DNA of 64,000 nucleotides from Octopus sinensis (Eukaryota), in the NCBI RefSeq assembly GCF_006345805.1, contig NC_043005.1:20460001-20524000 (forward strand), written 5' to 3'. Below, piece by piece: positions 2,898-61,637 of the stretch. Each line of letters opens with the position of its first letter. Within the stretch, counting starts at the first letter, position 1. The position numbers and the translations under genes were made by a program. Under the pieces are notes generated by a model, which was given only the letters and a program-made list of their open reading frames with translations, searched no databases and was not told the origin of the DNA.

Positions 2898-3131
2898 CCA
2901 CTGATCATGTTTTTCAATTAAAAAAAGTTACCATAAGGGGGTATGATAATATTGGACGGCTTAAAAACATAGACCCAATGCAGTGTCATCAAGCATGTCA
3001 TGCATACTCAGGATGTTCATCTTATGAGTACAGTGAGACAACTAAGCAATGTGATCTGAGTAATGTGACTCACCTGACTCAAAAACTTGAACCCAGCAGT
3101 AAAGGTTGGGATATTTACATATTTAATCCAG
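2898..3131 (+). CDS. Exon PANa1: PAN/apple domain
   Basis: ttttttttccag|CC...AATCCAG|gtcagt; 234 nt; [77 protein letters not shown]; C-x3-C-x5-C-x11-C PAN core. Confidence 0.9.
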
Positions 3132-5974: not shown

Positions 5975-8900
5975 TATTATTTTGGTTTAGCTCAGGTTTA
6001 GTCTTATTCATGGTGGGATTTATGTGGGTAGCGGGTTACTATCTGTAACCTTCGGTATCCACAAGTTATCAGCAGTCTTTCAAGTGCTTAGAACCCTCCT
6101 GATAATCCTTGTTGTCCCTAAGAGACAAATTTTCTGTAGAAGCTCTACTGGGCATTCTATTTCAATCTCCTTCAGCTATTTATCTATATCTTTGCTTACT
6201 GTTCCCAGTTCACCAATTATAGGTATATATTTACTGTTCTCATCCTCCAAATTCTTCCTATTTCAAATTGTAAGGGACTGTATTTTTCTGTTTTTTGTCC
6301 TCTCGCTTTACAATCATGAAATCAAATGAGCATGATTGGTCGATCAGTAAGCAACTTTGCTTTTCCTTATCTATAATTGTTAGTTTTGGTCTATCATTTT
6401 CTAATTTCTTGTCCATCTGAATAGGAAAGTCCCACAAAATTTTACATTTCTCTAACAGACAAACATGTATGTATGTATGTATGTATGTATGTACGTATGT
6501 ATGTATGTATGTACGTACGTACGTACGGACGGACGGACGGACGGACGGATGGACGGATGGATGGACGGATGGATGGATGGACAGATGGATGGATGGGTGG
6601 ATGGCCGGATCTATGCATGTATGCCTGTATGTATGTATACACATATATCTGTATAAACCATATGTTCATGTAGATATATATTTGTATACTTTCATATGCA
6701 TGAGAGTGAAGCCCTGGTAGAATGATCTAGCAGGAGATAGAGGACATGTCTGCACCAGTGCATGTAATGGATAGCTATGAGGTGGGAAACTGTGGATCAA
6801 TGTGTGTGCACATGCAGTTCTTTGTTGGGAACATGATGTTCTCGATGGTTCTCAGGGCTCTGGTATTGAAGCTGTTGATGCTCTTTGCCAGAGTTTTCAA
6901 GAGGGGCCATGTTTCTGCTTGACAGATGGCGGGATATGACTAAGGAAGATCTTTGGAGGCCTGGAGGATGCAGAGGGGCTGACATGGGACTGCCAACAAT
7001 GGAGAGCACTGGTGGACCTGGTCAGCTCTATGCATGATGATGGCTTTGGGATCACTAACCTGGGATGACTCCAGACCCATCAAACAAGATCATGAAGCAA
7101 GCAAGCGACATATGCACGTATGTATTTGTGTAAATATGTATGTGCAAATTTCTTAAATTTGTTTCATTCAATATCTTTTATTACAAATTGTCATTATCTC
7201 TTCATTTTCATATAAGGCCATTTTTATGAACTTCTATCAATTTCAGCTTATTTACATATTCACTGTGGAAGTCCAAAATATGTTGAAGGTGCATTGAAGT
7301 CCTACACGACCACCAACTACAAATCAGTAGTGGAATATTCTTGCCCAGGGGGTGAAAAATTTAAATCAAGATGTGAACAAGGAGGTAAATGGACTCCAGT
7401 AATAGCTACTTGTAAAGGTAACATAAATCACATCTTTCTTGTTGCTACTGTATTGATAACTTTATTTAATTTTTTAATGAAATATTTTAGTCAGAGAAAA
7501 AATGGCTGACTCCATGGCAATTTCCACAGTATCTGTGGCTGGTCGGAGAGAGAGAGGACATTATCCTCAGACCTAAGACCCCTCCAAATGTTTGGAAATG
7601 TGGAAGCTTGTCTTCTCTGCCATGATTCCAAATAGTTCCAATCTACCAGATTTCAACCTTAGTTGTGAAGCAAATGTTTAATCACATAACCAAGACTCCA
7701 CACAATACCTCATTGTTGTGACATGAACTTATTAATCCCAAGCTATATTTGACCCATTTCTCTTTATTTCTGACTTAAGTTGTCCCACCCATAATTTGTT
7801 TCATCATCCATCTCTCTGTACAATATAATGTACTGAATCCTTCATTACTAGATTTTGGCTATCCTCTGAAACAGCTATTTGATGATCCATTGATCTTTTA
7901 ATCACTGCCCTTAATTAAAATAATACTGCAAATAATTATAATGGTCTCTGATTTTGGCTTATGGCCATCAAATTTTGATGAGAGTGGTTTAGTAATTACC
8001 ATTGACCCCAGTACTTGACTATTACTTCATGTTTTAGACTGCTGCTAGGATGACAGATGGAGTTAACCTTGGTTGAATTTGAACTGAAAATAAAAAGAGC
8101 CTGAATATATAGTGTAAATAATTTCTTTGAAAACATCAATGATTCTTCCACTCAGCCACTTATAATTGTATAATTGATAATAGTAATGATTTTTTTTTAT
8201 TTGTCTCTAGGACATGATATTAGGCAGATGATACAAAGATAAGCATAAAATATAATTGTTTATAGAGAATCAAACAAGTAAAAGAAAAATATTAGTTTAC
8301 ATGTATACGTTTAAAAGAAAGATGAGAATGATGATACAGTCTTCCTAAATATAGAAGGATCTTTATCTAGGGCCAGCTGAAGAACTCCATCATTGAAGAT
8401 CATCCTTAACTCCAAGGACAAATGTCCACCCCAGTTATACAGGCCTGCTACCAAAAAATTGTTTCACATATATTGGGTGAAGCTGTTCAACTTTTACTTG
8501 CTGATTTCGAAAATTACAAAGAAATTATCCTATCATGTACAGTTTCTTCCAAAAATTGATCATTGCATTTACCATTATGCCTGATTTTGACTATTGCCTT
8601 TATCATTACTATTGATTGCTATATTTAAATAGACATTAACAGTATAATAGGTGTAATTTTGTAAAATAAGCATCTAGCAATGTTTAGATTGCTTCAACTA
8701 CACAGAGAGGTACCTGCATCATGGTAGCTTCAGTTGCCTACAAGCAGTGAGGAAAGAAAGACATGCATTACAAGGTCATGTTATTCAAGTATCTTTTTAT
8801 ATTTCAGTTATTTCCTCATGCCTTTTTCAATATACATATGCTATGGTGCATTGTTTTATTATATCATATATTTTAAAGCATCTTTAATGATATTATGTAT

Positions 8901-11900
8901 ATACTTAGATGATAAATCAAATATATAAACTAGAAAAGCACTCAGAGAGTGTAGACCTCTGCCAAGCAGCTCATTTCCACCCATATACACACATGCTAAA
9001 AATCACCCAATTTCCCAAACTAATGCCAGCAAAAACATAACCTCATTGGCAAGGTTTAAAAAAAATAACACAGCCATATGAATTTAAAAAAAACCCTTAA
9101 AAACAGGTATCATCTGAAGCAGTTATAATACATCAATGACAACAGCAAGCTAGTTTCACCATACAACTAAAAAGAAACAACAATTACCTAAAACTTGAGT
9201 GATACACACACAACGCAAGTAAAATTACTAATAGAGAAACGAAAATAAACTTTGGAAACAGCAACGCCACCATAGGTTACGTTGAAACAATGAACGTGTT
9301 TTCAAGGGAGATAATCAAAGAACGTAACAATACTTCATGTAAAGTAAATATAACAAATGAAAAATCTTTCAAGAATCCATACAAATTCCTGGATCACTAC
9401 CAAATTTTCATCATCTGTTCCTTGTGTCATTACCAACTTTTTCTGCAAGTTTCATCAAATATTATTCACAATGTTTTGAGTTATTTTGCACACAGACGGA
9501 AAACCAATACTGATGAAAACATGACCTTCCTTGGTGGAATTAAAAATGTCCCCTTTCCCTTTCCTTACAGACTTCCTCATAATTTGAAGTAAGGATGTGT
9601 TCTTGAAGATGTACAGCAATCTTGGATAATTTTTTATTACATTTGTAATGAGTTTATGACTAAAATACATAAAAAAACATTACAAAATTTGTCAAAAATG
9701 TTACTATGCTTACATTGGTGTGAAATTAGGAGACCAAGATAAGAAGTGGGTTCCTCATAAGGCTTGCTCAATTTGTGTTGAAGAACAAAGAAACAAAGAC
9801 GATGGACAAATATACAGGGAAGTCATTTCCTTTTGGGGTTCTAATGATATGGAAAGAGCCTAAAAATCAGTGAAGAGTGTTACTTTTTGCTCATGTAAGG
9901 TGTAGGAACACAATTTGAAGGGTGAGAAAAACATTGTTTATCCAAATCTTCCATCTGTACTGTGACCTGTTGCTTATTGACCAGATGCTTGAGTCTTATC
10001 ACTACCAGGAAATCTTGAAGACATACGCTTGAGTTATGAGTCAGAAGATAGAAATAGTAATGATGATGAAAGCTTCAATTGCAGTGAAGGTAAAGAGTCT
10101 CAACTATTCAACCAATGTGAGTTAGATAATCTAATCAGGGACTTGGGGCTCACAAGCTTTTAGGTTCCAGACTTAAATCCAAGAATCTTTTAGCTCCTCA
10201 CACATAATTCTATTGGTATTATAATTGCGAAAGGGAATTTGTTCCTTATTTTTCACAAGAAAATGATTTGGTTTATTGTACTGAGCCATCAGGGCTAATA
10301 AGAAAATTTGGGATAAATTACAGTCCTGATGAATGAAGACTCTTTATTGACTTTTCGAAGAGAAGTATTAAAGCTGTTCTACTACATATGCTTTCATACC
10401 TGTTCAACACTCAGTGATCATGAAGGAAGCATATGAAAATTTGGTGTCACTATTACCCAACAATAAATTTAATGATTACAACTGGATAATTTGTGGTAAC
10501 TTGAAAATAATTTGCTTGGACAAAAGTTAGGCTACACAAATCTCCTTTGTTTCTTGTGTAAATTGGACAGTAGAAGTAGGAACCTCCATAAGTCTAAAAA
10601 AGAATGACCAGCTTGTATATGCTTAGACTAGGAACAAAGAATATCTTTTGAGAAAATTTGGCTGACCTGAAAAGGGTTCTTTTACCTCCTCTACATGTAA
10701 AACTTGGCCTCATGATATAATTCATAAAAGATTTGCTACAGGATGGAGAGGGCTTTGGGTAGTTGCATAGCAAATTTCCTGTGTTGTCAGATACCAAAGT
10801 TGAAGAGGGTGTATTTGTAGGACCAGATATAAGGAAACTTGCCAAGGATGAAAATTTTTAAAATTCTCTTAGTGATTCTGAAAAGATGCATGAATTAGTT
10901 TTAAAGATGTGAAGAAGAACTTCTTGCATAATTACAAGGATCAAAACTAAAAAGATACTGTGGGAAGAATGCTGGAAAATTTTTAGGTCTTAGGATGTAA
11001 AAGGAACATCAAAATTCATTTCCTATATGCCCATTTTGGATTTCTTTTGAGAAAATCAGGGGGATCTGAGCAAAGAACAGGGGGAAAAGTTTCATCAAGA
11101 CATAATGGAAATGGATAGAAGATATCAGGGAATATGGAATGTCAATATGATGGCCGACTACTACTGGATGTTGCATTGTGAATGTCTGTCAAATAATCAC
11201 AAGTGAAAGAGTTTCAGACATAGTTTCCGAGTGAAAAAGAAATGAAAAGAAGGAGTTAACCTTCTAAAGATGATGACTTCTTTTTATTGCTCACTAAAAT
11301 TATAATGTTGATGAATAAAATTTCTTAGCTTGTTACATTAAATTGTTGACATCTACTCCAAATTTAAATGAATTCACTAGAAACATTGCAAAATCAGTAA
11401 AGCAATGGGTTATAAGTAAGGCCTTGCCACGACAAAACATATTTAGTTACTTTCTTTTACATTCTGGGTGTGCTTAGCTTTTTATTCTTATGAGGTTGAT
11501 AAACTCTAATCAAGTCTGAGATGGATTTATTCTTTAGTATTCTTACTGCAGAATGTCTGTAGTTGTATTTAAGCTATCAAAAATTATTATTAATTTTGTT
11601 AACGTCAACAGCAATTATCAACTTTGTTAATGGATTGACCATTTGACATTAGACAAAATGTATTGTGGTATTTGTTCTGGCTCTTTACCTTCTGGTTTCA
11701 AATCCTGCTGAGGTTAACTTTGTCTTTCTTTCTTTGGCTGTCAATGTAAATATATCAATCAAGGGTAGAAACCAATTTAATTGACAAACTCCAACTCAAA
11801 GTTTTGGCTTTCCATGTTAGAAATTATTATTGTGGTGGTTATCATTTTTCATTGGCCTAAATTTTACTTTAATCCTAGATATTGACATCTATTTTGTGAA

Positions 11901-13337
11901 GATAAAGCAGGCAATTCTGGATGTATCAGGGAAATCAATGTGGTCTCCTAGAAGGAAAGGAGCAGAAAGCTGTGCAGAAAAATGTTTGAATAATGACGAA
12001 TGTTCATCATTTGAAGACTCAGAGGAGATGGGATATTGTTACCGATCAAAGGAAAGTGCAGCTACCTCCACGAAAATAGTGGAATTTGATGACAGAGATT
12101 ACTATCAAAAAATAGATCGTAATTATTCTTTGTATTTTATTATTAAACTCTTTTTTTTTTCTGAAATTTGTGATTACGTTTGTATTTCATTTTATGTAGA
12201 CCTACACTTCTGTAAAGACATTGTTAAATTTACCTATAAGGACAGACATAGTTACTGGAATATGACATGGTCCTTGGACCCTATAAGATCCTATCAAATT
12301 GTCCAAGCCATGTAAGCTTGAAACATAGACATTCAAAAATGATGATGGTGATGATGATATCAGGGCAATCTTATACAGCATTTGTTCACCCTAAATACTT
12401 TTTTTGCATCTTTTCAAATGTTTTTTGATGTAAGAAAGGCAAGTTTTGTTGTCTTTGTTAAACCTGAATAGTAGCAATAATAGAAGAAACAATAACTTTA
12501 TGTTCATTTTCCCATGTTGGCATTGTTTAAACTGTACTGTTACAAAACTGTCTCAAACCTAGTTGCTAGCCTTCAAAATCTAATATATATTATACATACA
12601 TACATACATACATACATACATACATACATACATACATACATACATGTATCCAATAAATCTAATTGGTGATGATTATTTGTATAAAACATAAGGAGAAGAG
12701 GTAAAAAATGGAAAAAAATTATCTTATACCACCTCTCTTTCTTTATATTTTATACACTCCTAATGAAATAATGTCTAACAAGTGGATTTATTGGATGGAT
12801 ACATACATACATACATACATACAAAACAAACAAACAAAATATAAAGAAAGAAAGGAGATATAAGATGAAAATAATTATTTCACCAATTGACATCCATACA
12901 ACTACGATCATTAAAAAAAAAAAGTGAAATGATCGTAGTTGTCAATTGTCAATTGGTGATATAATTTTTTTTAATCTTATACACTCCCAATGAAATAATC
13001 ATTACGAATAGGATTTATTGGATTTCAACTGCATTGGACTACAGATTACATCCCTTTATTTTGTTTTGGTTTACTATGTGGTTTGTAGCCTGATCCATTA
13101 AGAAGTTTTTTTTATGAGTATCACTAGATTAGTTAAATCCATATATTTTATAGTTTAAAAGTTTAATTTCTCTATCCTTAGAAAAAAAATTGTCTAACCT
13201 TACAAAAAATTTTTTAATGATCATAATAATCAAATAGTATTATCTGATACGACCCTCCCATTTATCACTGTATCCAAGATGTAGGAGGGAGCAAAGGAGA
13301 CACAGACTGTGACATCCCATATATTGTCCATTAAATT

Positions 13338-19300: not shown

Positions 19301-20042
19301 TGCAAGTGGGTCAGAGGCATTACTTATTGAACGTCCCTCGTATTCTTAAGAGATTTTCTCTCTCATTTCTTGTTCATTATCCTATTATCATGCAACACTC
19401 CTAGGTATTTGTATCCCTCATTATTCCACAGCAATCTAATGATGCTGTGACAATTTTATGCTGTCTGATTTGGCATGGTTTCTACAGCTGGATACCCTTA
19501 TCAACCACTCCAGAAGTGTATTGGGTACTTTCACATACCACTGGCATGGGTGCCATTTACATGACACCGGCAACAATCACGACTATGATTCTTGGGTAAT
19601 TTTTACATGGCACTGGCAACGACCATGACTATGATGCACAAGTGCCATTAAAATGGCAATGACCACGATGATTCACAGGTGCGCTTTACATGGTACTGGC
19701 AACAACCATGACTACTATTTGTAGGTGCCATTTCCATGGCATGGTCATTGACCCCAACTCCAATTCATGGGTGCCATTTACAAGGCACCAGAGATGGCCT
19801 GACTCTAATTCCATGGGTACAATTTACATGGCACTGGCAATGGCCACAATTACGATTTCACTTGGCCTGACAAGTTTCTCATGCACAGCATATTGCCAGA
19901 GGTCTCTTTTCCTTTGCTTCATCCCTTGCTTAGGAATTTTATCTTTTTTGCTCATTCCATCAATCTCTCCTTTGAATTCTTCTCATAACGTGCCAAATTA
20001 TTATTATTATTATCATTATTATTATTATCATTATTATTATTA

Positions 20043-20079: not shown

Positions 20080-23000
20080 AAATATTTTTTAAACATTAAA
20101 AATAATTATCAAGTAGTGCCATTTAATTGAAATTATAAATAAAATGTTTGAAAGCCATCTGGTTTAATTTTTTTTAATGGACAGTTTTTTTTTATAAAAG
20201 CACAGTCCATCCACAACATTATTTTTTGGCATGAGACACTCTTCTCAGAATTCTTGTGAACTCTGCTAAGTCATGAGACATACTCAAAACTTCACATCAA
20301 TGTTTAGGCTGCAGTTAATCCATCAGAAGAGAAATTTATTCTGATGGTGTGCTTTGGTTTAAAACTGAATAATGGCACTTGACATGTTGGTTGATCACAA
20401 GTATAAGGGAAATTTTACCTTACAAAAGCATACCCTCAGAGGAAGAAGTACAAAAGGATTATTTACAATCTAAATATTGAAATAAAGTTTTGAGTAAGTC
20501 TCAAGATGTACTATTACTCACATGAATGCTGATGAGGATATGATTTTGCTGATCAAATATTTGTTTATAAAAAATTGTCCATTATTCTCCATGTGTGGTA
20601 TAATACTTAATATATGTTTGTAGAGTTTCTTTTGTGTGTGAGTGTGTGTGTGTGTATGTGTCTGACTGCCAGTCTTTCTGTTTTTATATGCATGTATGAG
20701 TATAATATGTATTTCTTGATTTTTTTCCAGCCTATGGTGAGGTTTTTGTATTTAAAAGAGTTCATATACCAGGGCAGGATAATTTTGAACAGTTTAAGAA
20801 CGTGGACTTAAAGAAGTGTCATGAAAAGTGCTTGAAACATCCGCAATGTTTTTCTTATGAGTACCATGAAAGAACGAAGGCCTGTGATCTGAGTAATGCA
20901 AATCATTTGAGTCATGATCTTAAGCCCAATGAAAAAGGTTGGGATATTTACATACTTAATCCAGGTCAGTTGCTTGTTTTCATTTTATTAATCATGTGTC
21001 CATTGTGTGTATTTATGTTTGTATACATCTGTGTGTGTGTGTATCAAATATATGCATATCTATGTATCTGTGTGTATATACATATGTGTATGTATATATA
21101 TAAACATATATGCCAGAATGGACAATGGATGTTAAATGATGATGATGACATTTATCTTCTTTAAATATAAAACTGAGAATGTGTGTCTGTCTGTCTGTCT
21201 GTCTATCTGTCTGTCTGTCTGTCTATCTGTCTGTCTGTGTGTTTCCCTAAAACTTGAGAACTGCACAACCAATTTCATTCAAATTTTACACATGCCTTAC
21301 CTAGGGTCCATGTAGTTTCATGGGCAAAAAAAATGTTCAACTTCTTGCCTAGAGCGAGCCCATAGCAATATCATATCTTCTCCACTATTTCAGTATTACG
21401 TGTTAAAAGTGAAACAAAAACATTTCTCTATTTCATGTCAGATACTTTCACTTTAACAATAAAAATAATAATAACAATTGAATTATATGCAGTAAGTAAT
21501 AATTAAAATCAAACTAAAGTATAATATAATCATAACATAACAAAAGTAAAAATAGCAATTGGTATAAAATTGCATCAATGACTTGAACTTGAATAAGTGG
21601 TTTCACATGAATGGAAATAAATTAAAAATAAAATTAGCATGCAGAAATGGAATAGTCCAGATGGATAATAAAAAATTAAATTAAAGAAAAGACTATTGTC
21701 TATAAAGTATACAATGTAGAGAAAAAAGAAGATTTGAAAACATGGAGGAAAGCACCTTCGAAAAGTGTCTTGGTGCGACTATGAAAGATATCTAATCAGA
21801 GGCAGTAAATTCGCCACAATAGAAGCAAGGTTCGAGTCAACGGAGCGTGCAAGGGAGTACTCGACTCGAACTTGCCAAGTGGAAATATTTTATTTTTACC
21901 TTTATATCTGGGACGTAGGACGTCCCGGAAAAAATTTAAAATGCCCCCCCCCAGAAGTAGAGGTAGGCTGGATTGTAGCCGCACTTCTATACAAGAGGGA
22001 GAACAAGATACAATTGATTGAAATTACAAGAGATGGGCTAACAATTCCAGAGTCTGTTATATATTTTGAGTATTGATATCACTGGCGATATCAAGATATA
22101 ACTTTGTATTTTGTATTTTATGTGTAGATGTATATATATATAGATGTACATGTAATATGTACACATTATATATACACATATATACATGCACTAGCACTAT
22201 GACCCGGCAACGATGGGTCTTTAATGCTAGTAATATATAATACAGGTGTGTGTGTGTGTGTGTGTGTGATGACCATTACTTGATCCCACGTAAAATCAAT
22301 ATTTTTTATCTAATTTCGTTCACACTTGGCAAATACATCACTTATGTTCCACAGATGGCTCTACACTATTTAGAGTTTTCACTTATGGAGTAATATGGAA
22401 TAATAGCGCTTCTAAGGTCAGAAGGTCTGTACTTTGCGAAATAACAGTCAGAAATTGATTGTTTCCCTTACACAGCAATAATCAAAAAAAAAAAAAAGGC
22501 CAGAAGGTCTGTACTCTGTGAAATAACAGTCAGAAATTGATTGTTTCCCTTACACAGCAATCATCAAAAAAGGTCGTAACCAGGAATTTTTGGTTGACAA
22601 TTGGTGGATCGTAGCCCACAAAAAGATGCTCTGCAAACCATTTCATGCACACATCAACATAGAATTCAATGACGAAAACCAGGCTAGCCTACACAGTTGG
22701 ATCCAGCCATGTACAAAGGCGACACAATCAGATGCGTCTACAGAGTTCAGCCCCTGAACTCCAAATGCTTCCATCTGCAGCTCTTACTTTATGTCATTAA
22801 GGGATCAATCTCCTTCAACAACCTTCGCACAATGGACGGCCACTTATGCGGCACTTATCCTGCTTCAAACTGATACAGATAATCAATATGATAATGCACT
22901 TGAAGAGGCCTCTCTGTGTCGTCCTCTGCACAAGCTCTGACACCTTTTCGCAATAATGCTGGTTTTCTGCAACCTGACAAATGCACATTCACTTTGGAAT

Positions 23001-40300: not shown

Positions 40301-42113
40301 AATGGCAACACTTGTTTTTGTTAAACCTGACTAGAAACAGTAGTAGTAATAACAACATTTGTCTTTTCTGGCATGACTTAGGGCTATTAGAGCACAGTGT
40401 CTCACCCACTAGATACAGTTCTTCCTAATTTGATACACAAAATAACTAAAAAAAAAAAAATATCGTTATATGGAGTCATGTATCACTGATATTTTGGCAT
40501 GGTTATTAGGGATGGATGCCCTTCCAGCCAATATACCACTTAAAGAGAGTACATTTTTCAATGCTACTGGAGTGAGAGAAATTTTCTATTGGGGTTAAAG
40601 AATCTTCTCAACATAAAATAAGTTCTCATTCAGAATAGTTCCATGGTATTTAAGAATAGAACAGTCAACAACTGTATTTAATTTGATCTCAAGAACTTTG
40701 TCTTTTATTATCAAAATCCTTCTTTCTTGAAATCTTGAACTTCAGAGGAAATTCACTAGGTTTAATGAACTCAATATCAAAAAAATCCTGAAAGCTAGGA
40801 TGTCATTGCTATTGTGATGAATTTTTGGGGGCCACTTTTGAAGACCTCACTGTAATATTTAACCTGAGCACTTTCAATAACTTCATGCACATTCACAGCT
40901 CAGATTTATACAGAGACAAAAGCTTAGCAATTTGAAAGAAATGAAGCTAGCTTGGTCCACTGGATGTGTAATGTCATAGTGTAAGCGCCCTGAGAGAAAT
41001 GTTGGAAGCATCAGATGTGGCTTACAAGAGAGATGACTGTGCTGGTATGGTCATGTACTACAGATAAATGAGGAGAGCTATGTGAAGAAGTGCCACTCCC
41101 AAACAGTAGAAGGAACCTGTGGTAGAGGGAGACCCAGGTAAACATGGGATGAGGTGGTAAAGCATGACCTTCAAAGGTTGGGCCCCACAGAGGCAATGAC
41201 AAAAGACTGGGACCTCTGGAGATATGCTGTGTCTGAGAAGACCTGGTAGGTAAAGTGAGATCACAGTTGTAGCCTACACCAGTGTTACATAACCAGCCTA
41301 TTTAAAAAGTGCCTTTGGATTGTCGGTCGACATGCCGTGCTTGAGGAGACCTATTGAATCAAGTACATCAAAATTAAAATCAAAATCAAAATCAAATCAA
41401 ACTACAATCAAATGGAAATTGTAGTTGTAGCTGATACTAGTGCCGCCTGACTGGCTTCCCATGCCAGTGGCACATAAAATTACCATTCGAACAGGGTCAA
41501 TGCCAGCCTCCTTGCTCTGAAATTACTAAAAGCATCTACAATTTATCCTCAAATAGAGATATTTTTGGCAGTATACTTACAATATTTTTGCTAGGATTGG
41601 CTCTACTATAAAAAAAAGAATATCCTCCATCTCTAAAACTGAAGAAAATTAGAAAAATAAGAAAAGTTTGGTCCAACCCTCTCTTCAATTTAAATGTCTA
41701 CAACCAGAAAAGTTTTATCCTGTGTTAGACTCCATTTCTTGGTCACATGGAAGTATCACAAGCTTATTAATATGCCTAGTGTCAAGGTTTGCTACTCCTG
41801 TCTGCTACAATAGGATTACTTTATTCAGTCTTTTTATCAGACATCCATCTTCAATTACCAAAATCAACCCATCTCTCCACTGAGAAACTTTCTAAGATAG
41901 AGGTTTATAGGGCAACTCTCACTCCTCTTGATGATTTCCCAATGAATTACATGGGACTCACAGTCAATGACTTCATTGAAAGTTTCACTCAGCATATACA
42001 CTCATTTTTATGTGAAAACTTCAGGAACAGGGAAATGATCTGCCCAGCATAATCTTGAGCTTATGCAACACACCACACACACAAACACACACACACACTC
42101 TCTCTCACGCACA

Positions 42114-44794: not shown

Positions 44795-45313
44795 TATATG
44801 TATGTGTGTGTGTGTGTATATGTGTGAAAGCATGAGTGTGTGTGCACATGCATGTGTGTGGATGTGTATGAGTATAAAATGTATTTCTTTCCCTTTTGTT
44901 TTTCCAGCTGATGCTAACATGATTGCATTAAAAGCAGTAGGCATACCAGGACAGGATAATATTGGACGGCATGATAGTGTGGACGTAAAGGCATGCAATA
45001 AAGCTTGCCTTGAATATACAGGATGTACTTCTTATGAGTACAATGATAAATCTCAATACTGTGATTTAAGTAATGTGACTCATGCAACTCATGAACTTAA
45101 ACCCAACACTGCAGGTTGGGATATTTACATCTTAAATCCAGGTTAGTAGAATATTTTCTCATTTTATCCTTTGCATGTCTGTTTGTATTTACATACCTGA
45201 ATATGTATATAATACATATGAATATAATATATATGTATATATACATATATGTATGTATATGTGTATATATGTGTGTATGTGTATGTATGTATGAATATAT
45301 ATATATATGTATA

Positions 45314-48300: not shown

Positions 48301-48765
48301 TGAAAGGAAGATTGTGTGATACATGTATAGAGCAGCAATGCCACATGGAAGTGAGACATGGGCCCTGAATGCAGAAGACATGTGAAGGCGAGAGAAATGA
48401 AGCTTATATGCTCTGCTAGATGTGCAATGCCAGTGTGAAACAGAACACTAGTATTTTGAGGGAAAAGTTGGACATAAGAAAAATCAGCTGAAATATTGAA
48501 GGCTGATCTCAAGACACTGAGCCTTACAAAGGAGATGATTAAGGATGAATTGCTGTACTCAGAGCAAATTTGATGCCAGTACTGGTGCCACATAAAAAGC
48601 ACCCTGTACACTCTATGGAGTAGTTGGCTTTAGGAAGGGCATCCAGCTGGAGAAGCCATGCCAGAACCAGCTCCAGTCAAACTGTCCTATCGATACCAGT
48701 ATGGAAAACAGAAGTGAAATGATGATAGTGATGAAGAAGAAGATATGTGTGTGTGTGTGTGTGTA

Positions 48766-48826: not shown

Positions 48827-51800
48827 AGTGTGTATGTGTGTGTGAGTGTGTGTGTGTGTGTGTATGGCCATTCCTCAATGGAAAGGAGGCCAGTCGATTA
48901 GATTGACTCCAGTATGCAACTGGTACTTAATTTATCGACCCCAAAAAGATGAAAGGTAAAGTCGACCTCAGTGGAATTTGAACTCAGAATGTAAAGACAG
49001 ATGAAATACCACTAAGCATTTCACTTGGCGTGTGAGCGTTTTTGCCAGCTCGCCACCTTTAAATATATTGAGTATATTATGAAAAACCTGTCCTGTTTTG
49101 TTTTCCACACTATGTTTGTTTGTGTGAATGTATTTTTGTGTTTTCTTCAATATGAAGTAGGGCAGCATAAAATTTTAGAGAATATTATGTAGCGTGATTT
49201 TGATTGCAGGAAATATCTATATGAGAAAGAGTAGTTGGTACAAGTAATAGTTGGTATCTTTCATTTAAATAACAAAGAATTTTGTTCATTGAACTATTGA
49301 GGATATGAAGATGTGGGAAACACTTGTGTATGAAAAATTGACTCTGATATGCTTAAAATATCTAGCAGAGTAGACTAGAATCTAGTTCCTCAATTATCAA
49401 ACTAAATAATATGGGAATGTTATATGCAAGGACTAGAAATGCATTATAAAGGGTAATAAAGGCAATGGAAATACATAGAATAAGGAGACTACAAGAGCAT
49501 CAAATTTTCAAACATAGCCAACTGCTACAAAGGTAAAGGTGACGCTTTAGACTGGTATAGCAGCACCATAGTCAACTGCTACAAAGGTAAAGGTGACGCT
49601 TTAGGTACAAATAATTACAGAGGTATCAAGTTGTTGGATCAGGTAATGAAGGTCACGGCAAGGTCATAGCCCAACTATTTAGGGAGAGAGTCAGTTTAGA
49701 CGAGATGCAGTTTGGGTTCATGCCAGGGAATTGCACCACTAATGCTATATTTCTGGTAAGACAGCTGCAGGAGAAATACCTAACCAAAGATAAACCTCTG
49801 TACCTGGCTTTCATTGACATGAAGAAAGCCTTTGACAGGGTCCCCCCGATCCCATATCTGGTGGTCAATGAGGAACCTAGGGTTAAGGCAACCTGTGGAA
49901 GCTATCCTCATCCATTCTCACTACATCACCACAGCTATCTCTCTTTCACACCACATCTGATACTTCTATGGTCCAACTTTTCTCTCAAGGTACTTAAACT
50001 CTGTCGAGTATGCACACTGACATTACACATCCAGCGGAGCATACTGGCTTCATTCCTTGCAAGCTTACGCATGTCCTCAGCAGTCACGGTCCATGTTTCA
50101 CTGCCATATGGTGGTTTAGGGAACCTGTGGATGAGGTGGTGAAGCACGACTTTCAAACATTAGGCCTCAGTGAGGCAATGACTATTGACCGAAATATGCT
50201 GTGCTTGAGAAGACCAGGCAAGCTAAGTGAGACCATAACCTGTGGCCTATTCCAGGGGTTTAACCAGCCCTCTTATCTGTACCTTTCCTTCATTGGACAC
50301 TAAACTTTGCTTGCGAAGACCTGTTGAGGTAAGTGAAATCGAAATCGAAATCAAATTTGATGACTGGCATCTGTGCCAGTGGAGCACTAAAAGCATCATC
50401 CTAGCATGATCGTTGCCAGAGCAGCTGACTGGCTTCCGTGCCAGTGGCACATAAAAAGCACCATTCAAGCATGATTGTTACCAGCATCGCCTTACTGGCA
50501 CTTGTGCCCTAGTGAATGTGAAAACTATTGCAGCAAGGGTCATCAGCAGTGCCGCCTGGGACTGGTTCCTGTGCAGATGGCATGTTAAAAAAAAACCATT
50601 TGACTTGCCCTCGTGCTGGTGGCACGTAAAAGCACCCACTACACTCTCGGAGTGGTTGGCGTTAAGGAAGGGCATCCAGCTGTAGAAACTCTGTCAGATC
50701 AGATTGGGGCCTGGCGCAGCCATATGGTTCGCCAGTCCTCAGTCAAATCGTCCAACCCATGCCAGCATGGAAAGCGGACATTAAACGATGATGATGATGA
50801 TGTTTGAAGTGTATCAAAGACTAAGAGAGGATTTGCAATCATTCTCTGATGATTATGTAATGTTAGTGTGCATGAATAGAAGAGTAAAAATGAGCAAAGG
50901 AAAAGCTATATATAATAGAATCTAATATGATGTGAAGAAAAAAAAAACTTCTATGGTTCAGGCATATGATGCATATAGAGAATGATTGCTATATAAGAAA
51001 TTGTCAAGTGATCAAACTGAACAAAATTTGCAGAAAAGGGAGACTGAGGAAGACTCAAGACAAAACAGAGAAGACAAAAGATGATGATAATTGGTGTTAT
51101 GTAAAGCTGCAGTAACCTGATGAAATGTACATTAGAAACAGCTGTGTTGAACAATGTGTGTGGGTGTATTTATATCTCTGTGCAACTTGCTTCACTCAAT
51201 AAATTTCATTGTAAACCTGTTATGTTCTCATTCTCATCCTCCTCCTAACATACTTTCACCATTAGTGTCAATTTCTGTCATCAATCAAGAAGATGATGAT
51301 GATAATTGGTGTTATGTAAAGCTGCAGTAACATGATGAAATGTACATTAGAAACAGCTGTGTTGAACAATGTGTGTGGGTGTATTTAATCTCTGTGCCAA
51401 CTTGCTTACTCAATAAATTTCATTGTAAACCTGTTATGTTCTCATTCTCATCCTCCTCCTAACATACTTTCACCATTAGTGTCAATTTCTGTCATCAATT
51501 CCAGCTTATGTGCAAGTTAAATGTGGACCTCCAAAAGATGTTGCTCTTGGCAAAAAGGCCTACACTACCACCAGATACAAATCTGAGGTGACTTATACTT
51601 GTGATGATGGAAATCAATATAAGTTGACATGTGAAAAGGACAGTAAATGGAGTCCCATAACATTTTCTTGCAAAGGTAACGTAAACAGCTTTTCTCTATT
51701 TGCCTCTGTCTATGTGACTTTTTAAAAAGAGTTTAAATTATGTGTTTTTGTCAGAAGAAAGTTGACTCTTCATACATACATCTTCTTTGCCCATTTAATG

Positions 51801-52766
51801 CCAGAATGGGAGAGGGGAAAGAATCCTCAAGCATACCTTTCATGAGATCCTGTCAGAAGCAACTGTCTTCTGTTAGACCCCAAGACTAGCCAAGCACATG
51901 CATGTTATCCAAGCACCTTGCTCGTGGTTTATTCCTGGGTCTCCTGCCTGTTGGTTTTGCCTGTAAAACAAGTCTTTCCCAATACAATCTTACCACATGC
52001 CCATATTATCAGAGTTGTGATCTCTTAATTTGGAGACATTGTGGCTCCACCTGGAGTGACACACCGATTTCTGAGCTACACATTCTATCGAGAACATTAC
52101 TCCTATGTCCCTTTGGTGTGAACCCCATCTTGACCACTTGTATTGGTGATCGTATTGCTTCAGTCATCCCATGAGTTATGACCACAGGTAAGGATAGGCT
52201 TAAATACCAATTATTCAGCATTTGCACTTACTTCTCTTCTGATGATGATGGAATGTTGAAACTGGCACATTACTGCCCCAGCTCCTGTAATTCTTGCACA
52301 TGCATCACAACCACATGTGTATGACATGGTGACCTCCTATCATAAAAAAAAAATGCATAATCTTACATGTGGAACCCAGTTAGAACTTTTTTCAGATTGA
52401 CTGGCTCATCCTACTCAAAAGGTCCCTAAATAAGGTTTGTTTAAGGATGATGAACAAAACACCCACGTTTCCAGAGGCAAATTATTCAAACCCCAAAGAA
52501 TTTCTTTTGAAACATGGTTATGAAATTCCTCACAACTCCTGTTCATGGTCAGAAAAGCACATATCATCAGCCACTGAAGGACATACTCAACTGAATAAGG
52601 TCAAGCAACTGACAAGCAAATCTGTAGTATTGAGTAGAATATTTGCAATAGCCCACCTTTTACACCAAGACAAAGCATATACATGTTAACACTTCCAATC
52701 AGTTAAAATCAGAAGCCATGAGAGCCACTGCTTGTTACTGTATCATGGCATTATTATTATTATTAC

Positions 52767-55429: not shown

Positions 55430-58400
55430 TTCTCTTTATCACAAGTTTTGTTGCAGCTCCTGGAGTTTTACATGTGTTGTGTATTATCATTATTAATACC
55501 TCTGCCTTAGCGAAAGTGGGGGCATTGTTTTCAGTTGCATTTGTTTGTTTGTTTGTTCATGGACAAGATATCTCAAGAACTGCTGGTTGGATTCAAATGA
55601 AATGTGATGAAGTTCACCTGTCATTTTATTCATTCCTCCAGGGTGTTATTTTAGTAACTCACAAACATATTTGCACTCATGTATTTTGAGGAGTGAAAGT
55701 GTAGTAGATTCAGAACATTTTCTGAGAATGTGCACTTTCAGATGTCCCTCAAAATTGCAGCTGCTTGATGTAAAATGTTTGGCAAATTCTGTCAAACTAC
55801 TGCAATTGTGCCTAATGAATCTACCTGTGCCTATTGAATCTTTTGTTCAATTGTTCTGTTGTACAGCCAACATAAATAAAGTTGTGTTTAGTGCATTCTG
55901 CTGCATACACCCAATGAGAATCTTTACATGTCTCACCTTTTGTATAAATCATAACGTTTCTGTTATGATTCTTGATGGATTTGACTCAACTCATGTTGTT
56001 GCACAATGAACAGGGCTAACTTCTTTTGCATCTGTTGCAGCATTCAGAAACACCAGTTTTAGTTTTGTTGGAGTCAGTAGTAGAGGATAATATTTCTCTT
56101 ATATTTTGTTGAGGGCTACTGAGTTATAGCTTAGACTTGTTCAACCATCTGCTGCTCCATTTTTCTTTGCAATACACATATCATATGCTCTCTTATTACA
56201 AACCACTTGTACAACTATCTGTCACTCACATCTTCTCCTTGACCACTTTAGTGTTGATGTCATCATAAAATACACTCTGTATACTCCACACTGTAAAGTG
56301 GTTGGTGTTTAGGAGGGCAGCCAGTCAAAGAAATCTTACTAAATAAAACATACAAGTAGGAAAAGATGCATATTCATGGTTCAAGGGAATGCTACAAGTC
56401 TGAATGAGAGGTGACTGATATTGCATGAAGGGATCCAATTTGCACTAGCAGCATAAAATGATGATAATAATACTAAAATATTTATATGCATCAACACACA
56501 CAAATATACAAGGTATGTATTGAAACATATCTGAATATATGTATTCACTGTTTTACACATGCATATATGTATGTACATGTACATACACCCATATGTGTGT
56601 GCGTGTGTGTGTGCGTGCTTGTGCGTGCTTGTGTGTGTGTGTGTGTGTGTGTGTGCATTCATATCACTGTGTAAATAGCTCAACTTGCTTCAGTCAGTAC
56701 CTTTTATTGTAAATTTGTTACCTTCTCATTCTCACCTTCCTCCTAACATACATTCACCATTAGTGCTAATTTCTCTCATTAATTTCAGGTAAGGTTGACT
56801 GTAAAACTCCAAAAGATGTTGCTGGTGCAAAAAAGACCTACACTACAACTACCTTAAAATCTGAAGTGATTTATACTTGTCCAAAAGGAACGAAGCTAAA
56901 ATCAATATGTGGAGAGGACAATAAATGGAGTTCACTTGCATTTTCTTGCAAAGGTAACATAAACAGCTTTTCTCTATTTGTCTCTGTCTAGGTGACTTTT
57001 TAAAAAAAGTTTTACTTATGTGTTTTTGTCAGAAGAAAGTTTGCTCTTCATACATACATCTTCTTTGCCCATTTAATGCTGGAAGGGGAGTGGGGGAAGA
57101 ATCCTCAAGCATACCTTTCATGAGATCCTGTCAGAAGCAACTGTCTTCTGTTAGTCTCCAAGACCAGCCAAGCACAGGTATGTTATCCAAGCACCTTGCT
57201 CGTGGTTTATTCCTGGGTCTCCTGCCTGTTGGTTTTGCCTGTAAAACAAGTCTTTCCCAATACAATCTTACCACATGCCCATATTATCAGAGTTGTGATC
57301 TCTTAATTTGGAGACATTGTGGCTCTACCTGGAGTGACACACCGATTTCTGAGCTACACATTCTATCGAGTAACATTACTCCTATGTCCCTTTGGTGTAA
57401 CCCCATCTTGACCACTTGTATTTGTGATCGTATTGCTTCAGTCATTACCCATGAGTTATGACCACAGGTAAGGATAGGCTTAAACACCAAATTATTCAGC
57501 ATTTGCACTTACTTCTCTTCTGATGATGATGGAATGTTGAAACTGGCACATTACTGCCCCAGCTCCTGTAATTCTTGCACTAAATTGAGCCACTTTCTTT
57601 TAATCACTTGTGAAAACAATTCCTTGATACTTGAACTTCTCCTGCTTCAGCGAAACTTTATTTATATGTAGAGTACTTCACGCAAGCTTCTTAAGAGAAT
57701 TAGTGTCTTAATCTTTGCAGAACTGATTTTCTATCCTGCTGAGCAGCTCTCAGCAGGAAACCTCTCATGAGCTTGTCAGAGATCACCTTCTGATGAGTTG
57801 AGTCATTCAAATTTCAGCCAACTATTCCTATACCTACTGGTCTCAATTCCACTTTCAACTCAGTTGCACATGTTAGTCCTTTCCTCTATGGGTGAAGTTT
57901 GACATCCATAGAGATTTCAAGACAACAAGCTGTCCTTTATTCATTGTCCCATCCTCCTGAAGAACCTCCCACAATACGTCCTGAGTGATTTAGTCATATA
58001 TAGCCTTTTCAAGGTCTACAAAGCAAGCATACACCTCTTGACCATACTTCCATGATGTCTTGAAAATTTGTTGCAGTTTGCATATTTGGTTGTCTGTGCT
58101 GTATCCGTTGTGAAAAACCACACTGTTTGCCTGCCAGCATAGATTTGACAATATCCTAACAACTCTTCATCAAACACTCAGCATAGATTCTAATGGGGGA
58201 GCTTCACAAGGAGATTCTTCTATAATTAGTGCATTCTGCCTTGCCTCCCTTTTTGAAAATTATTCATCTGAGGCTGAATTTTGTCTTCTCCAGGAACCTT
58301 GCCGTATTTGAGCTTTGTAATTGCTCTTGTGACCAGTTTCTGAAAGGTTAGTCATCACTCCTAGATGCACCTCATATGTGTCAGAAGATGGACCAAGTAT

Positions 58401-61400: not shown

Positions 61401-61637
61401 ATATACAGCTCAGCTTCGTGAAAGTAAAGAACGCCAGTCTGGATGTACTTAAGAAAACATTGATAGATAGCAAAACCTTAACAGGAGAAGCCTGTGCAGC
61501 AAAATGCATGACTCTTGAAAGTTGTTTATCATTTGAAATAACAAAAAGTGGAAAATGTTATAAGTTAGAGGATACTGCAGCTTTCTCTAACCATATAAAG
61601 ATAACCCCAAACAGAGATTACTACCAACGAGTAAAAC
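2898..61637 (+). CDS. Multi-exon modular PAN/apple + Sushi(CCP) domain gene or tandem gene cluster, partial; 11 domain exons, all phase 1-1
   Basis: Eleven exons with canonical polypyrimidine-AG acceptors and GT donors, lengths 234,171,240,234,171,168,240,234,171,165,237 (all multiples of 3), no internal stops, conserved Cys spacing. Junction codons (G+CT, G+GT, G+AT, C+CC, C+CT) are all sense. No ATG or signal-peptide exon seen in the window. Confidence 0.85.
3512..4228 (-). mobile_element. Degraded mariner (DD34D-type) element
   Basis: Minus strand [19 protein letters not shown]...HPGRS and [10 protein letters not shown]...[16 protein letters not shown]; terminal TA|ttgggtcatcccataaataatg. 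Confidence 0.75.
4229..4900 (-). mobile_element. R4/Dong-like non-LTR retrotransposon RT fragment
   Basis: [42 protein letters not shown] (RT N-terminal block). Confidence 0.65.
5524..5980. repeat. Long (ATT)n microsatellites
   Basis: Direct reading; other long arrays at 1430-1545, 19997-20078, 43843-43997, 52750-52822, 54048-54094, 55308-55428, 63661-63775. Confidence 0.95.
5677..6460 (-). mobile_element. Two stacked R4/Dong-like 3' ends, each with an (AAT)n tail
   Basis: 5981-6460: RLE domain [34 protein letters not shown] and [17 protein letters not shown]. 5677-5853: [16 protein letters not shown] plus 3' UTR. ATT arrays at 5524-5676 and 5856-5980. Confidence 0.75.
6465..6645. repeat. 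Compound tetranucleotide microsatellite (ATGT/ACGT/ACGG/ATGG)
   Basis: Direct reading. Confidence 0.95.
7247..7417 (+). CDS. Exon CCP1: Sushi/CCP domain
   Basis: caatttcag|CT...TGTAAAG|gtaaca; 171 nt; [56 protein letters not shown]; 4 Cys, C-x2-P start, V-x-Y-x-C, C-x5-W-x6-C. Confidence 0.9.
8211..8242 (+). CDS. Putative terminal mini-exon T1 ([10 protein letters not shown]-stop)
   Basis: Strong acceptor atttttttttatttgtctctag|GACAT; in phase 1 it reads to TAA at 8240-8242; homologous acceptor after CCP2 at 30602. Confidence 0.45.
9590..11230 (+). mobile_element. Degraded DNA transposase, CMC/Chapaev3-like
   Basis: Frameshifted motifs [87 protein letters not shown]. Family assignment is from memory of these motifs. 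Confidence 0.65.
11879..12118 (+). CDS. Exon PANb1: PAN/apple domain, second subtype
   Basis: ttttactttaatcctag|AT...GATC|gtaatt; 240 nt; [79 protein letters not shown]. Confidence 0.88.
13379..13765 (-). mobile_element. Non-autonomous Helitron
   Basis: On the minus strand, 3' end cccgagcaacgccaggcaatactgCTAG|t with subterminal hairpin; 5' end TATATATATAAAGCTGTAGTTGTCTGT. Confidence 0.7.
14453..14673. mobile_element. piggyBac-type MITE
   Basis: TTAA|cccttttgttac ... gtaatgaaaggg|TTAA (TTAA on both sides, about 12-bp imperfect TIR). Confidence 0.75.
15002..15540. repeat. Long inverted repeat, arms about 195 bp, spacer about 147 bp
   Basis: 15002-15198 is the reverse complement of 15346-15540 at roughly 90% identity; no clear TSD. 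Confidence 0.9.
15640..16300 (+). mobile_element. RTE-LINE 3' end plus SINE-like tail ending (GAT)n
   Basis: Similar to the 3' end of the RTE copy at 33764-35560; ends aacccatgccagtatggacaatgaatgctaaatgatgatg. Confidence 0.65.
17580..19430 (-). mobile_element. R4/Dong-like RT C-terminal fragment interrupted by a mariner
   Basis: EGYKYLGVL ... KEY|[24 protein letters not shown] ... [12 protein letters not shown]; the frame joins across the mariner TA site. Confidence 0.7.
18054..19340 (-). mobile_element. Full-length mariner transposon, 1287 bp, frameshifted transposase
   Basis: TA target duplication (18052-53, 19341-42); 37-bp TIR cgagg(g/a)cgttcaataagtaatgcc(c/t)ctgacccactt with 2 mismatches; ORFs 18916-19218 and 18245-18934 with [19 protein letters not shown]. 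Confidence 0.95.
20731..20964 (+). CDS. Exon PANa2: PAN/apple domain
   Basis: gatttttttccag|CC...AATCCAG|gtcagt; 234 nt; [77 protein letters not shown] (the ORF track splits it over two frames). Confidence 0.9.
21155..22230 (+). mobile_element. Non-autonomous Helitron (about 1.08 kb)
   Basis: A|TCTTCTTTAAATATAAAACTGAGAATGTGTGTCTGTCTG 5' end; 3' hairpin gaccc-ggcaacgat-gggtc followed by tttaatgCTAG|T. Confidence 0.75.
22231..25641 (+). mobile_element. Helitron with degraded Rep/PIF1 helicase
   Basis: [62 protein letters not shown]; 3' hairpin caccgtcc-gaa-ggacaggtg then catttgCTAG|T at 25638-25641; the 5' boundary is inferred. Confidence 0.8.
25128..25540 (+). mobile_element. tRNA-derived SINE nested in the Helitron
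   Basis: A box tggcttagtggttagg, B box gagttcaattcc. Confidence 0.65.
25656..26140 (+). mobile_element. tRNA-derived SINE with internal (TA)/(TATG) microsatellite
   Basis: ggcataggagtggctgtgtggtaag...ggttccgagttcagtcc head; tail ggtgctccagcatggccacagtc also seen at 1-200. Confidence 0.7.
26159..27050 (+). mobile_element. Penelope-like RT fragment with inverted partial duplication
   Basis: [32 protein letters not shown]; 26159-26315 is inverted relative to 26464-26597. Confidence 0.75.
27490..28070 (+). mobile_element. Degraded RTE-LINE 3' fragment plus tail
   Basis: Homologous to 34560-35560. Confidence 0.65.
28400..29150 (-). mobile_element. R4/Dong-like fragment (zinc-knuckle region)
   Basis: Minus strand HGYLAQK...[17 protein letters not shown]...[20 protein letters not shown], a degenerate CRxC...HI...C knuckle. 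Confidence 0.55.
29607..29777 (+). CDS. Exon CCP2: Sushi/CCP domain
   Basis: ctcttgttaatcccag|GT...TGTAAAG|gtaaag; 171 nt; [56 protein letters not shown]. Confidence 0.9.
30602..30669 (+). CDS. Putative terminal mini-exon T2 ([22 protein letters not shown]-stop)
   Basis: acttcatttatttgtttctag|GACAT...ATACAAAGA, homologous to T1; phase-1 frame ends at TAA 30667-30669. Confidence 0.45.
31222..32330 (-). mobile_element. Degraded mariner element
   Basis: [14 protein letters not shown]...[22 protein letters not shown]; TA|ttggattggagcaaaagt terminus. Confidence 0.7.
33764..35560 (+). mobile_element. Young 5'-truncated RTE-clade LINE; 356-aa RT ORF at 33774-34844, 3' UTR and (GAT)n tail
   Basis: [48 protein letters not shown]; single frameshift near the C-terminus. 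Confidence 0.92.
35684..35851 (+). CDS. Exon CCP3: Sushi/CCP domain (absent from ORF track)
   Basis: ttctgttaccaatttcag|CT...TGTAAAG|gtaaag; 168 nt; [55 protein letters not shown]. Confidence 0.87.
36707..37982 (+). mobile_element. Tc1/mariner-superfamily element, maT/DD37D-like, 1276 bp, degraded
   Basis: TA|cagggtgtc(t/c)caaaattaaggcaacca TIRs (about 27 bp, 1 mismatch), TA on both sides; [28 protein letters not shown]. Confidence 0.88.
39822..40061 (+). CDS. Exon PANb2: PAN/apple domain
   Basis: tcttattttaaatgtag|GT...GTAGAAC|gtaatt; 240 nt; [79 protein letters not shown]. Confidence 0.88.
40975..41500 (+). mobile_element. RTE-LINE 3' fragment
   Basis: Homologous to 34660-35230. Confidence 0.65.
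42400..43150 (-). mobile_element. LINE AP-endonuclease region fragment (RTE-like)
   Basis: Minus strand GAVIDTDH motif in degraded coding-like sequence. Confidence 0.45.
44908..45141 (+). CDS. Exon PANa3: PAN/apple domain
   Basis: cttttgtttttccag|CT...AATCCAG|gttagt; 234 nt; [77 protein letters not shown]. Confidence 0.9.
45915..46640 (+). mobile_element. RTE-LINE 3' fragment plus SINE-like tail
   Basis: Homologous to 34380-35560. Confidence 0.65.
47400..48720 (+). mobile_element. Degraded RTE-LINE RT fragment
   Basis: [27 protein letters not shown]. Confidence 0.75.
49515..50800 (+). mobile_element. RTE-LINE with internal inversion (+/-/+) and SINE-like tail
   Basis: + strand [15 protein letters not shown]...[13 protein letters not shown] (49705-49850); - strand [16 protein letters not shown] (49935-50105); + strand 3' end from about 50120. 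Confidence 0.75.
51078..51499 (+). repeat. Tandem duplication of about 208 bp containing the CCP4 branch/polypyrimidine region
   Basis: 51078-51285 and 51290-51499 are near identical. Confidence 0.95.
51505..51675 (+). CDS. Exon CCP4: Sushi/CCP domain
   Basis: ttctgtcatcaattccag|CT...TGCAAAG|gtaacg; 171 nt; [56 protein letters not shown]. Confidence 0.9.
53220..53420 (+). mobile_element. DINE-1/Helentron-like non-autonomous element
   Basis: attacctccgtc...ggcggaggtatt subterminal hairpin followed by gtttgtttgt; similar copy at 55495-55630, reverse copies near 9030-9055 and 9440-9545. Confidence 0.55.
53940..54760 (-). mobile_element. R4/Dong-like RLE domain and two stacked 3' UTRs with (AAT)n tails
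   Basis: Minus strand [27 protein letters not shown]; 3' UTR motif gtttcttt(a/g)ccctag...aagaaatggaa repeated twice, each followed by AAT repeats. Confidence 0.65.
56789..56953 (+). CDS. Exon CCP5: Sushi/CCP domain (absent from ORF track)
   Basis: ttctctcattaatttcag|GT...TGCAAAG|gtaaca; 165 nt; [54 protein letters not shown]. Confidence 0.87.
57090..58690 (-). mobile_element. RTE-like LINE inserted in the CCP5 downstream intron; its end is shared with 51840-52299
   Basis: Minus strand [27 protein letters not shown]...LQIKRSQL; post-CCP intron homology resumes at about 58700. Confidence 0.6.
59926..60210. mobile_element. hAT (Charlie-like) MITE
   Basis: TIRs cagtgcttctcaaa / tttgagtagcactg; degenerate 8-bp TSD ctctagat / cactaggt with CTAG core. 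Confidence 0.75.
61401..61637 (+). CDS. Exon PANb3: PAN/apple domain
   Basis: ttttactttaactctag|AT...GTAAAAC|gtaatt; 237 nt; [78 protein letters not shown]. Confidence 0.88.

Follow-up and report, generated by a model that had tools for sequence, protein, structure and literature searches.

What kind of gene lies behind a row of small, widely spaced exons on an octopus chromosome, and are these exons read one after another or chosen in combinations? The stretch in question comprises 64,000 nucleotides (nt) of Octopus sinensis DNA (RefSeq assembly GCF_006345805.1, contig NC_043005.1, forward-strand positions 20,460,001 to 20,524,000; hereafter the window, in whose own coordinates positions are given), and it carries exons for two kinds of extracellular module, PAN and CCP (Sushi). 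Our analysis suggests that the window is probably an internal stretch, of nearly three repeat units, of a giant gene for a secreted modular PAN/CCP protein whose exons are spliced serially. It is apparently a new, unannotated member or segment of a family that is already present in databases as uncharacterized predictions.

Comparison of domain peptides with the whole window by tblastn identified eleven exon copies, all on the + strand, which fall into three classes: three PANa, five CCP and three PANb, in the order PANa–CCP–PANb–PANa–CCP–CCP–PANb–PANa–CCP–CCP–PANb (A-c-B-A-c-c-B-A-c-c-B; Table 1). An AG acceptor and a GT donor flank all eleven, and each end lies in phase 1, making every exon phase 1-1. 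When joined, the exons yield 2265 nt encoding 755 amino acids (aa) without a stop codon, and the product contains 44 Cys, four per domain. An earlier, sequence-only reading of this DNA had proposed the same eleven one-domain exons, the same product length and the same end coordinate, all of which were reproduced by tblastn, splice-site inspection and joining. A decayed second CCP exon in unit 1, sought by protein and DNA comparison, was not found. All three PANb exons feature short pyrimidine tracts at their acceptors (11879, 39822, 61401) and weak donors of the form C/GTAATT (12118, 40061, 61637; the slash marks the exon end). A comparable weak donor, C/GTAAAT, is seen in a short paralogue from Octopus bimaculoides (locus L004).

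Both profile and structural comparisons identify the modules. Within the joined protein, Pfam detects six PAN_1 stretches (E = 6e-42) and four Sushi stretches (E = 2e-12), as the sequence-only reading had anticipated for its translation. Among four exons scanned singly, PAN_1 scores 33–41 bits per exon against a curated cut-off of 21.4, and CCP2 scanned alone scores 23.4 bits for Sushi (cut-off 20.7). Each of the five CCP copies has four Cys and a K/N-W motif, and in profile, Cys, Trp and length (about 55–60 aa) they are Sushi/CCP modules. AlphaFold models of PANa1 and PANb2, based on alignments of window exons with domains of their relatives, are confident (predicted local distance difference test, pLDDT, 87 and 91, respectively). 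In Foldseek, the N domain of HGF and the PAN module of plasminogen are the top matches of the PANa1 model (template modelling score, TM, 0.75–0.84) and likewise match that of PANb2 (E = 2e-5, TM 0.82–0.85). Among the 50 matches listed per model, every structure has a PAN/apple-type module, including PAN-bearing oxidase, S-receptor and MANEC entries and the factor XI apples. The models fit the PAN fold, an antiparallel sheet packed on one helix and held by two core disulfides, and the four invariant Cys are present; for PANa and PANb the structural matches agree with the profiles. The six-Cys apple subtype of factor XI and prekallikrein, which has a third, outer disulfide, was rejected, as every PANa and PANb exon encodes four Cys only; the window PANs are four-Cys PAN modules.

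The sequence-only reading did not recognize this architecture as a described gene family. This view does not hold, as the same architecture is annotated, though uncharacterized, in O. bimaculoides, O. sinensis and Octopus vulgaris. For the joined protein, the top match is O. bimaculoides LOC128248837, at 47% identity and 98% query coverage. Also among the best matches are the GON-terminated O. bimaculoides LOC106869402, a 'SVEP1-like' model of O. vulgaris and GON-Abd-1 of Abdopus aculeatus. Further members were collected from cluster listings and an exhaustive HMMER search. In O. vulgaris these comprise CAI9728796 (4283 aa spanning 252 kb, with a C-terminal GON domain, labelled 'ADAMTS20-like') and CAI9728791 (labelled 'SVEP1-like'); O. 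sinensis has a family model of 2643 aa (LOC118764742 is among the relatives), and O. bimaculoides has models of 4083 and 1865 aa, with LOC128248838 and LOC128248840 also among the relatives. The domain strings of all members consist of B-A-c(1-3) repeated, and that of the window agrees: it too repeats PANb–PANa–CCP(1-3), and each domain has a phase-1 exon to itself. ADAMTS9/20 and SVEP1 were rejected as identities, since the domains listed for the relatives include no reprolysin/protease, TSR, VWA, EGF or pentraxin domain and the window encodes PAN and Sushi only. Below the octopus hits, the exhaustive search returned matches of ~30% identity over CCP modules only, and the sole non-Octopus cephalopod match for the array was an Argonauta protein with two PAN pairs. 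Judged from these sequence matches, the giant array looks octopod-limited.

The genomic context of the family is clearest in O. bimaculoides, where members lie in the same direction at 88.12–88.82 Mb of CM046610.1, a region of about 0.7 Mb. Here the order is a short 465-aa gene, an NDUFV1-like gene, the array, and a CACHD1-like gene, with the array split into models of 1133, 709, 1865, 761, 4083 and 1067 aa. The relatives' models begin mid-domain without a signal peptide, and more exons in the same order and on the same strand lie outside and between them; because of this, these models are fragments of one or a few giant genes. Whole units between the models are unannotated, and the names 'ADAMTS9/20-like' and 'SVEP1-like' have been given even though only PAN, Sushi and GON domains are listed. 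Across the window and four O. bimaculoides loci, phase-1 GT donors stand at the expected place in all 77 domain copies (CCP 31/31, PANb 23/23, PANa 23/23). At the short paralogue's locus, a signal-peptide exon ends in phase 1, PANb and CCP occupy one exon each, whose ends are domain boundaries in phase 1, with the PANa exon between them, and GON is divided over four exons. The junction residues of the short paralogue GON-Abd-1 (…YYQRVK/P…, …NP/GY…CG and …CK/…) are those predicted in the window, and the window's exon boundaries are supported by this equality. A further protein, 517 aa long, combines a signal peptide with the PANb–PANa pair, a linker rich in Thr and three Cys-rich repeats, WSC-like by eye. 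Its existence suggests an older origin for the PANb–PANa pair as a building block, with use beyond the GON family.

Several features place the window within such a gene rather than at its ends. Signal-peptide-like and GON-like exons were looked for across the window and none was found, nor any GON (PF08685) coding sequence. Because there are no terminal exons, the first exon requires a base from an upstream exon and the last ends at a donor, the window is an internal piece; the array extends past both its ends, and no other gene lies inside it. Among annotated proteins the best match per window exon is 52–72%, and identity to any exon of the retrieved relatives or of loci L001–L004 and L009 is at most 67%. 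Only two exon-sized open reading frames, on unannotated Logan read-assembly contigs of a related species, score higher (79% for PANb1 and 73% for PANa2). The window copy is apparently unannotated because no annotated protein matches its exons closely, and it may represent another part or paralogue of the array than the annotated relatives compared here.

The exons are also under selection. Logan contigs L005–L008 (SRR11869384, SRR11869390, SRR11869391) match window positions 11250–12172, 17575–17727 and 20054–21110 at 81–84%, and we regard them as orthologous because the alignment runs across exon and intron at this level. Contig L005 aligns with the PANb1 region at 81% over 974 nt including intron, and L008 with the PANa2 region at 82% over 1087 nt; the ratio of nonsynonymous to synonymous divergence (dN/dS, omega) is 0.47 and 0.43 in the respective exons. 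The species of these contigs is about 15% diverged, and identity of the orthologous exons (86–89%) is hardly above that of the introns (81–86%). Pooled over the two orthologous exons, the proportion of nonsynonymous differences, pN, is 0.104 against a synonymous pS of 0.213 (Fisher p = 0.01). A dN/dS of ~0.45 implies that the exons are under purifying selection and therefore functional, but fast-evolving; on these two exons selection is purifying but weak. Between the window's own units omega ranges from 0.26 to 1.3 at a dS of about 0.5–1.6, which is partly saturated.

The repeat units behind this array are old. In self-blastn, 2267–3202 aligns with 20051–21044 at 66%, 19997–20561 with 43916–44448 at 71%, 39776–40825 with 61355–62385 at 65%, and 17044–17186 with 43666–43824 at 69%, giving unit lengths of 17.8 kb and 24.2 kb. 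These alignments, at 65–71%, bear out the homologous intron blocks and the duplicated unit of about 20 kb described by the sequence-only reading, near the places it gave. The three window units are mutually 35–52% identical at the aa level and no nearer one another than they are to units of other octopus species; they are old copies rather than recent ones.

Taken together, we propose a gene of an octopus family whose repeating cassette is PANb–PANa–CCP(1-3), each domain on its own phase 1-1 exon, and whose complete relatives carry a signal peptide at the start and a GON domain at the end. The array would have grown by old tandem duplication of a three- to four-exon cassette, with its introns later bloated by transposon insertions, and its exons would be spliced serially into one long PAN and CCP chain. 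This chain of disulfide-bonded modules could bind glycans or proteins multivalently, in a secretion or in extracellular matrix. PAN modules of other proteins have heparin, galactose, collagen or protein partners as ligands; the ligands of CCP modules are proteins. The window product is basic (isoelectric point 8.7, 12% Lys), with no membrane anchor and few glycosylation sequons. Secretion, as the sequence-only reading had supposed, is consistent with the lack of any hydrophobic or transmembrane segment in the joined product, and the relatives have a signal peptide and no transmembrane region. By analogy with these domain families, a multivalent secreted binder or a matrix or mucus component would be the most economical reading. 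Saliva (venom) would be one candidate site, because the short paralogue was recovered from posterior salivary glands. The names GON-Abd and GON-SepT derive from posterior-salivary-gland transcriptomes (GON-Abd-1 from complementary DNA), and the UniRef entries so named, GON-Abd-1/2 and GON-SepT-1/2, lend some backing to the venom-gland part of the role first proposed for this locus. None of the papers searched deals with GON/PAN proteins of cephalopods, and the sources searched contained no function or tissue assignment for any family member.

Several considerations weigh against this proposal. No annotated protein contains the window exons, the closest per-exon matches being those given above, and the gene may be silent or spliced otherwise than the relatives' models suggest. 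These models are computational, fragmentary, begin mid-domain and lack signal peptides, so that they argue only weakly for serial use. Weak splice sites at the PANb exons would also suit regulated inclusion. Finally, for binding function and secretion site alike, analogy with domain families is the only guide.

Five gene models of relatives span 48 genomic exons; of these, 46 enter the models whole and in genomic order, the remaining two apparently enter in part, and none is skipped. Variation in unit make-up, with one, two or three CCP exons, is already present in the genomes. These computational models thus weakly suggest serial splicing. Gene models of relatives also repeatedly join just the first part of a PANb exon (to …C-A-, then E or K, then K or G) to the next exon, as at 15000–15221 of O. 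bimaculoides locus L001, where the exon is intact in the genome (the sole case in which the DNA was compared), and in several units of an O. vulgaris model. Such joining could reflect an internal donor or a modelling artefact. The first ~30 nt of intron after each exon carry class-specific motifs (e.g. 7418–7447, 12119–12148 and 3132–3161) that are kept in 23–31 paralogous copies, about as well conserved as the exon ends, when the window is compared with O. bimaculoides loci L001–L004. Their consensus is GTAAtaTAAATAGnTTCTCTCTTgTTgT after CCP, GTAATTATTcTTTGTATTTTATTATTG after PANb and GTCAGTAGAgTaTTT..ATTTTATTT after PANa. These motifs may be splicing elements; together with the weak PANb sites they would fit regulated splicing, and would equally fit exon definition in long introns.

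A second peculiarity concerns the two tandem CCP pairs. In both, the first 520–620 nt of the 3' intron are 94–99% identical between pair members, whereas the exons are 68–73% identical (44–57% at the aa level). The 5' introns of CCP2 and CCP3 have diverged like the exons, with the switch in identity falling inside the exon's last ten bases, and in a domain tree CCP2 and CCP3 are not sisters. Six tandem CCP pairs in O. bimaculoides are without this intron-identical, exon-divergent pattern, and in the window pairs dS is raised as much as dN (0.47 and 0.43). Accelerated exon evolution as a general rule was rejected on account of the diverged 5' introns, the high dS and the six normal pairs. Recent gene conversion limited to the intron is likely the simplest account, with an assembly artefact or collapse also possible. 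If conversion halted at the exon twice, homogenized exons might have been selected against.

The sequence-only reading called the array 'fully combinatorial', with cassette exons used in many combinations, so that isoforms of a recognition protein (immune, allorecognition, gamete or venom) would differ domain by domain. We consider this unlikely. Every exon is phase 1-1 and divisible by three, so that any subset would stay in frame and escape nonsense-mediated decay, but such symmetry is what extracellular modules generally have (Patthy), also in constitutively spliced multi-CCP genes; it allows skipping without demonstrating it. The weak acceptors and donors of the PANb exons, the conserved motifs at the intron starts, the fast evolution of the exons both between paralogues and between orthologues, and the tandem CCP pairs with homogenized introns and exons kept different all favour choice among exons. 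Against it stand the absence of outright skipping from the five models of relatives, the irregular unit composition already written into the genomes, and the alternation of the three exon classes, unlike the clusters of like exons that are spliced mutually exclusively. Combinatorial use is conjecture so far. Quite improbable, too, is the fuller version of this idea, in which cells choose among PAN/CCP cassettes through the intron motifs and the weak PANb sites, and selection keeps the exons different despite converted introns, giving diversified secreted binders in saliva/venom or defence.

We think it very unlikely that the window is a silent relic of duplicated exons that are no longer expressed. 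Its absence from every annotation searched fits such a relic, as do introns swollen by transposons to ~5 kb per exon (1.7 kb in one O. bimaculoides segment) and the partial loss of N-glycosylation sequons conserved in relatives (0.5 per 100 aa, against 1.3–1.6). However, all eleven exons have kept open frames, both splice sites and, together, their 44 Cys despite ~0.5 substitutions per silent site between copies, dN is significantly below dS in two exons compared with their orthologues, and an intron density like that of the window can be deduced for annotated members (252 kb for 4283 aa; 35 kb for five exons). That the units are three separate small genes is barely credible: the family does include the short one-unit paralogue of 465 aa, and annotators have cut the relatives' array into many models, but those models start mid-domain with further exons between them, the window has no signal-peptide-like or GON-like exon, and each PANb phase-1 donor fits the next PANa acceptor with a Pro junction codon, as in GON-Abd-1. 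A single, serially spliced giant gene is the reading we retain.

The remainder of the window is AT-rich and full of microsatellites and transposon relics, and no Rfam family was found in it. An open reading frame for a long interspersed nuclear element (LINE)-type reverse transcriptase with a PHD finger (356 aa) lies at 33774–34844 (+), with two reverse transcriptase fragments at 47688–48490 and 49705–50142. A Mos1/mariner transposase with a helix-turn-helix domain occupies 18245–19218 (-), and pieces of a PIF1-like (Helitron-type) helicase lie at 23145–24470 (+). The window's transposon fragments are 83–97% identical to DNA of both O. bimaculoides and O. sinensis. In the related species the match to window 17575–17727 lies only 360 nt after the PANb exon, compared with 5.4 kb in the window, which implies that the window intron has gained about 5 kb.

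Table 1. Domain exons and conserved intron segments of the window (positions within the 64,000-nt stretch).
Feature	Position	Strand	Remarks
PANa exon 1	2898..3131	+	234 nt, phase 1-1; AlphaFold pLDDT 87
CCP/Sushi exon 1	7247..7417	+	171 nt, phase 1-1; 4 Cys, conserved Trp
PANb exon 1	11879..12118	+	240 nt, phase 1-1; weak C/GTAATT donor; orthologous Logan contig L005
PANa exon 2	20731..20964	+	234 nt, phase 1-1; orthologous Logan contig L008
CCP exon 2	29607..29777	+	171 nt, phase 1-1
CCP exon 3	35684..35851	+	168 nt, phase 1-1
PANb exon 2	39822..40061	+	240 nt, phase 1-1; AlphaFold pLDDT 91
PANa exon 3	44908..45141	+	234 nt, phase 1-1
CCP exon 4	51505..51675	+	171 nt, phase 1-1
CCP exon 5	56789..56953	+	165 nt, phase 1-1
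PANb exon 3	61401..61637	+	237 nt, phase 1-1
Conserved intron block 5' of PANa exons	2267..2897; copies 19997-20730, 43916-44907	+	self-blastn 65-71%
Conserved intron block 3' of PANb exons	40062..40825; copy 61638-62385, shorter copy 12119-12587	+	self-blastn 65-72%
Intron tract 3' of CCP exon 2	29778..30303 vs 35852-36395	+	96-100% identical; adjoining exons 68%
Intron tract 3' of CCP exon 4	51676..52299 vs 56954-57580	+	90-100% identical; adjoining exons 73%

These data matter because current octopus annotations split one of the largest gene arrays of these animals into misleadingly named fragments, or miss parts of it. This PAN–Sushi–GON array covers about 0.7 Mb, and single models within it reach about 4300 aa. 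The giant array is now linked to the small 'GON' proteins of cephalopod salivary (venom) gland transcriptomes. The family evolves fast and is a reasonable candidate for a component of saliva, mucus or matrix.

Mutually exclusive or hypervariable exon arrays of the Dscam type are runs of like exons of which one is chosen. The window's classes alternate, only the CCP pairs place like with like, and the relatives' models include both members of a pair. Among known systems, multi-CCP proteins such as SVEP1, CSMD and the complement regulators resemble the window in having CCP modules of ~55–60 aa, one per phase 1-1 exon. They are the next-best matches, at ~30% identity over the CCP parts only, so the likeness is at the level of the domain and not of the family; unlike the window, they have no interleaved PAN modules and possess other accessory domains. 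For the PAN modules, the N domain of HGF and the plasminogen PAN share the fold (TM 0.75–0.85 for both models) and the four core Cys. Sarcocystis SML-2 and TgMIC4 are weaker fold matches to both models (TM 0.64–0.69), and the leech anti-platelet protein matches the PANb model only (TM 0.73). Sequence identity between the window and these known modules (HGF, plasminogen, micronemal lectins, leech protein) is 9–23%. The outer Cys pair of factor XI-type apples is not found in the window PANs, and where factor XI needs two exons for one apple domain, a single exon here encodes the whole PAN module.

Another close system is that of the short coleoid GON proteins. These comprise GON-Abd-1/2 of Abdopus aculeatus, GON-SepT-1/2 of Sepioteuthis australis, O. 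bimaculoides LOC106874924 and O. sinensis LOC115215708, and with GON-SepT-1/2 and an Acanthosepion pharaonis protein the short gene has relatives in squid and cuttlefish. They share PANb, PANa and CCP modules with the window in the same order and with the same junction residues, but consist of a single unit with a signal peptide and a GON domain (451–503 aa), and the window's kinship with them is confined to the PAN and CCP modules. In O. bimaculoides one chromosome carries both, with the short GON gene ~125 kb upstream of the array. Conservation of the short proteins is strong, at 91% between Abdopus and O. bimaculoides; the array units, by contrast, diverge fast. Closest of all are the giant octopus PAN–Sushi(–GON) proteins, which have the same PANb–PANa–CCP(1-3) cassette, the same Cys patterns and the motifs …CLSFE…, …DYYQR… and …WDIYI.NP. 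Their genes differ from the window in that the exons are 52–67% identical to it, and its introns are ~3x longer than those of O. bimaculoides locus L001. As in the window, however, a phase-1 donor ends every domain exon, and the flanking introns can still be aligned at 65–75%.

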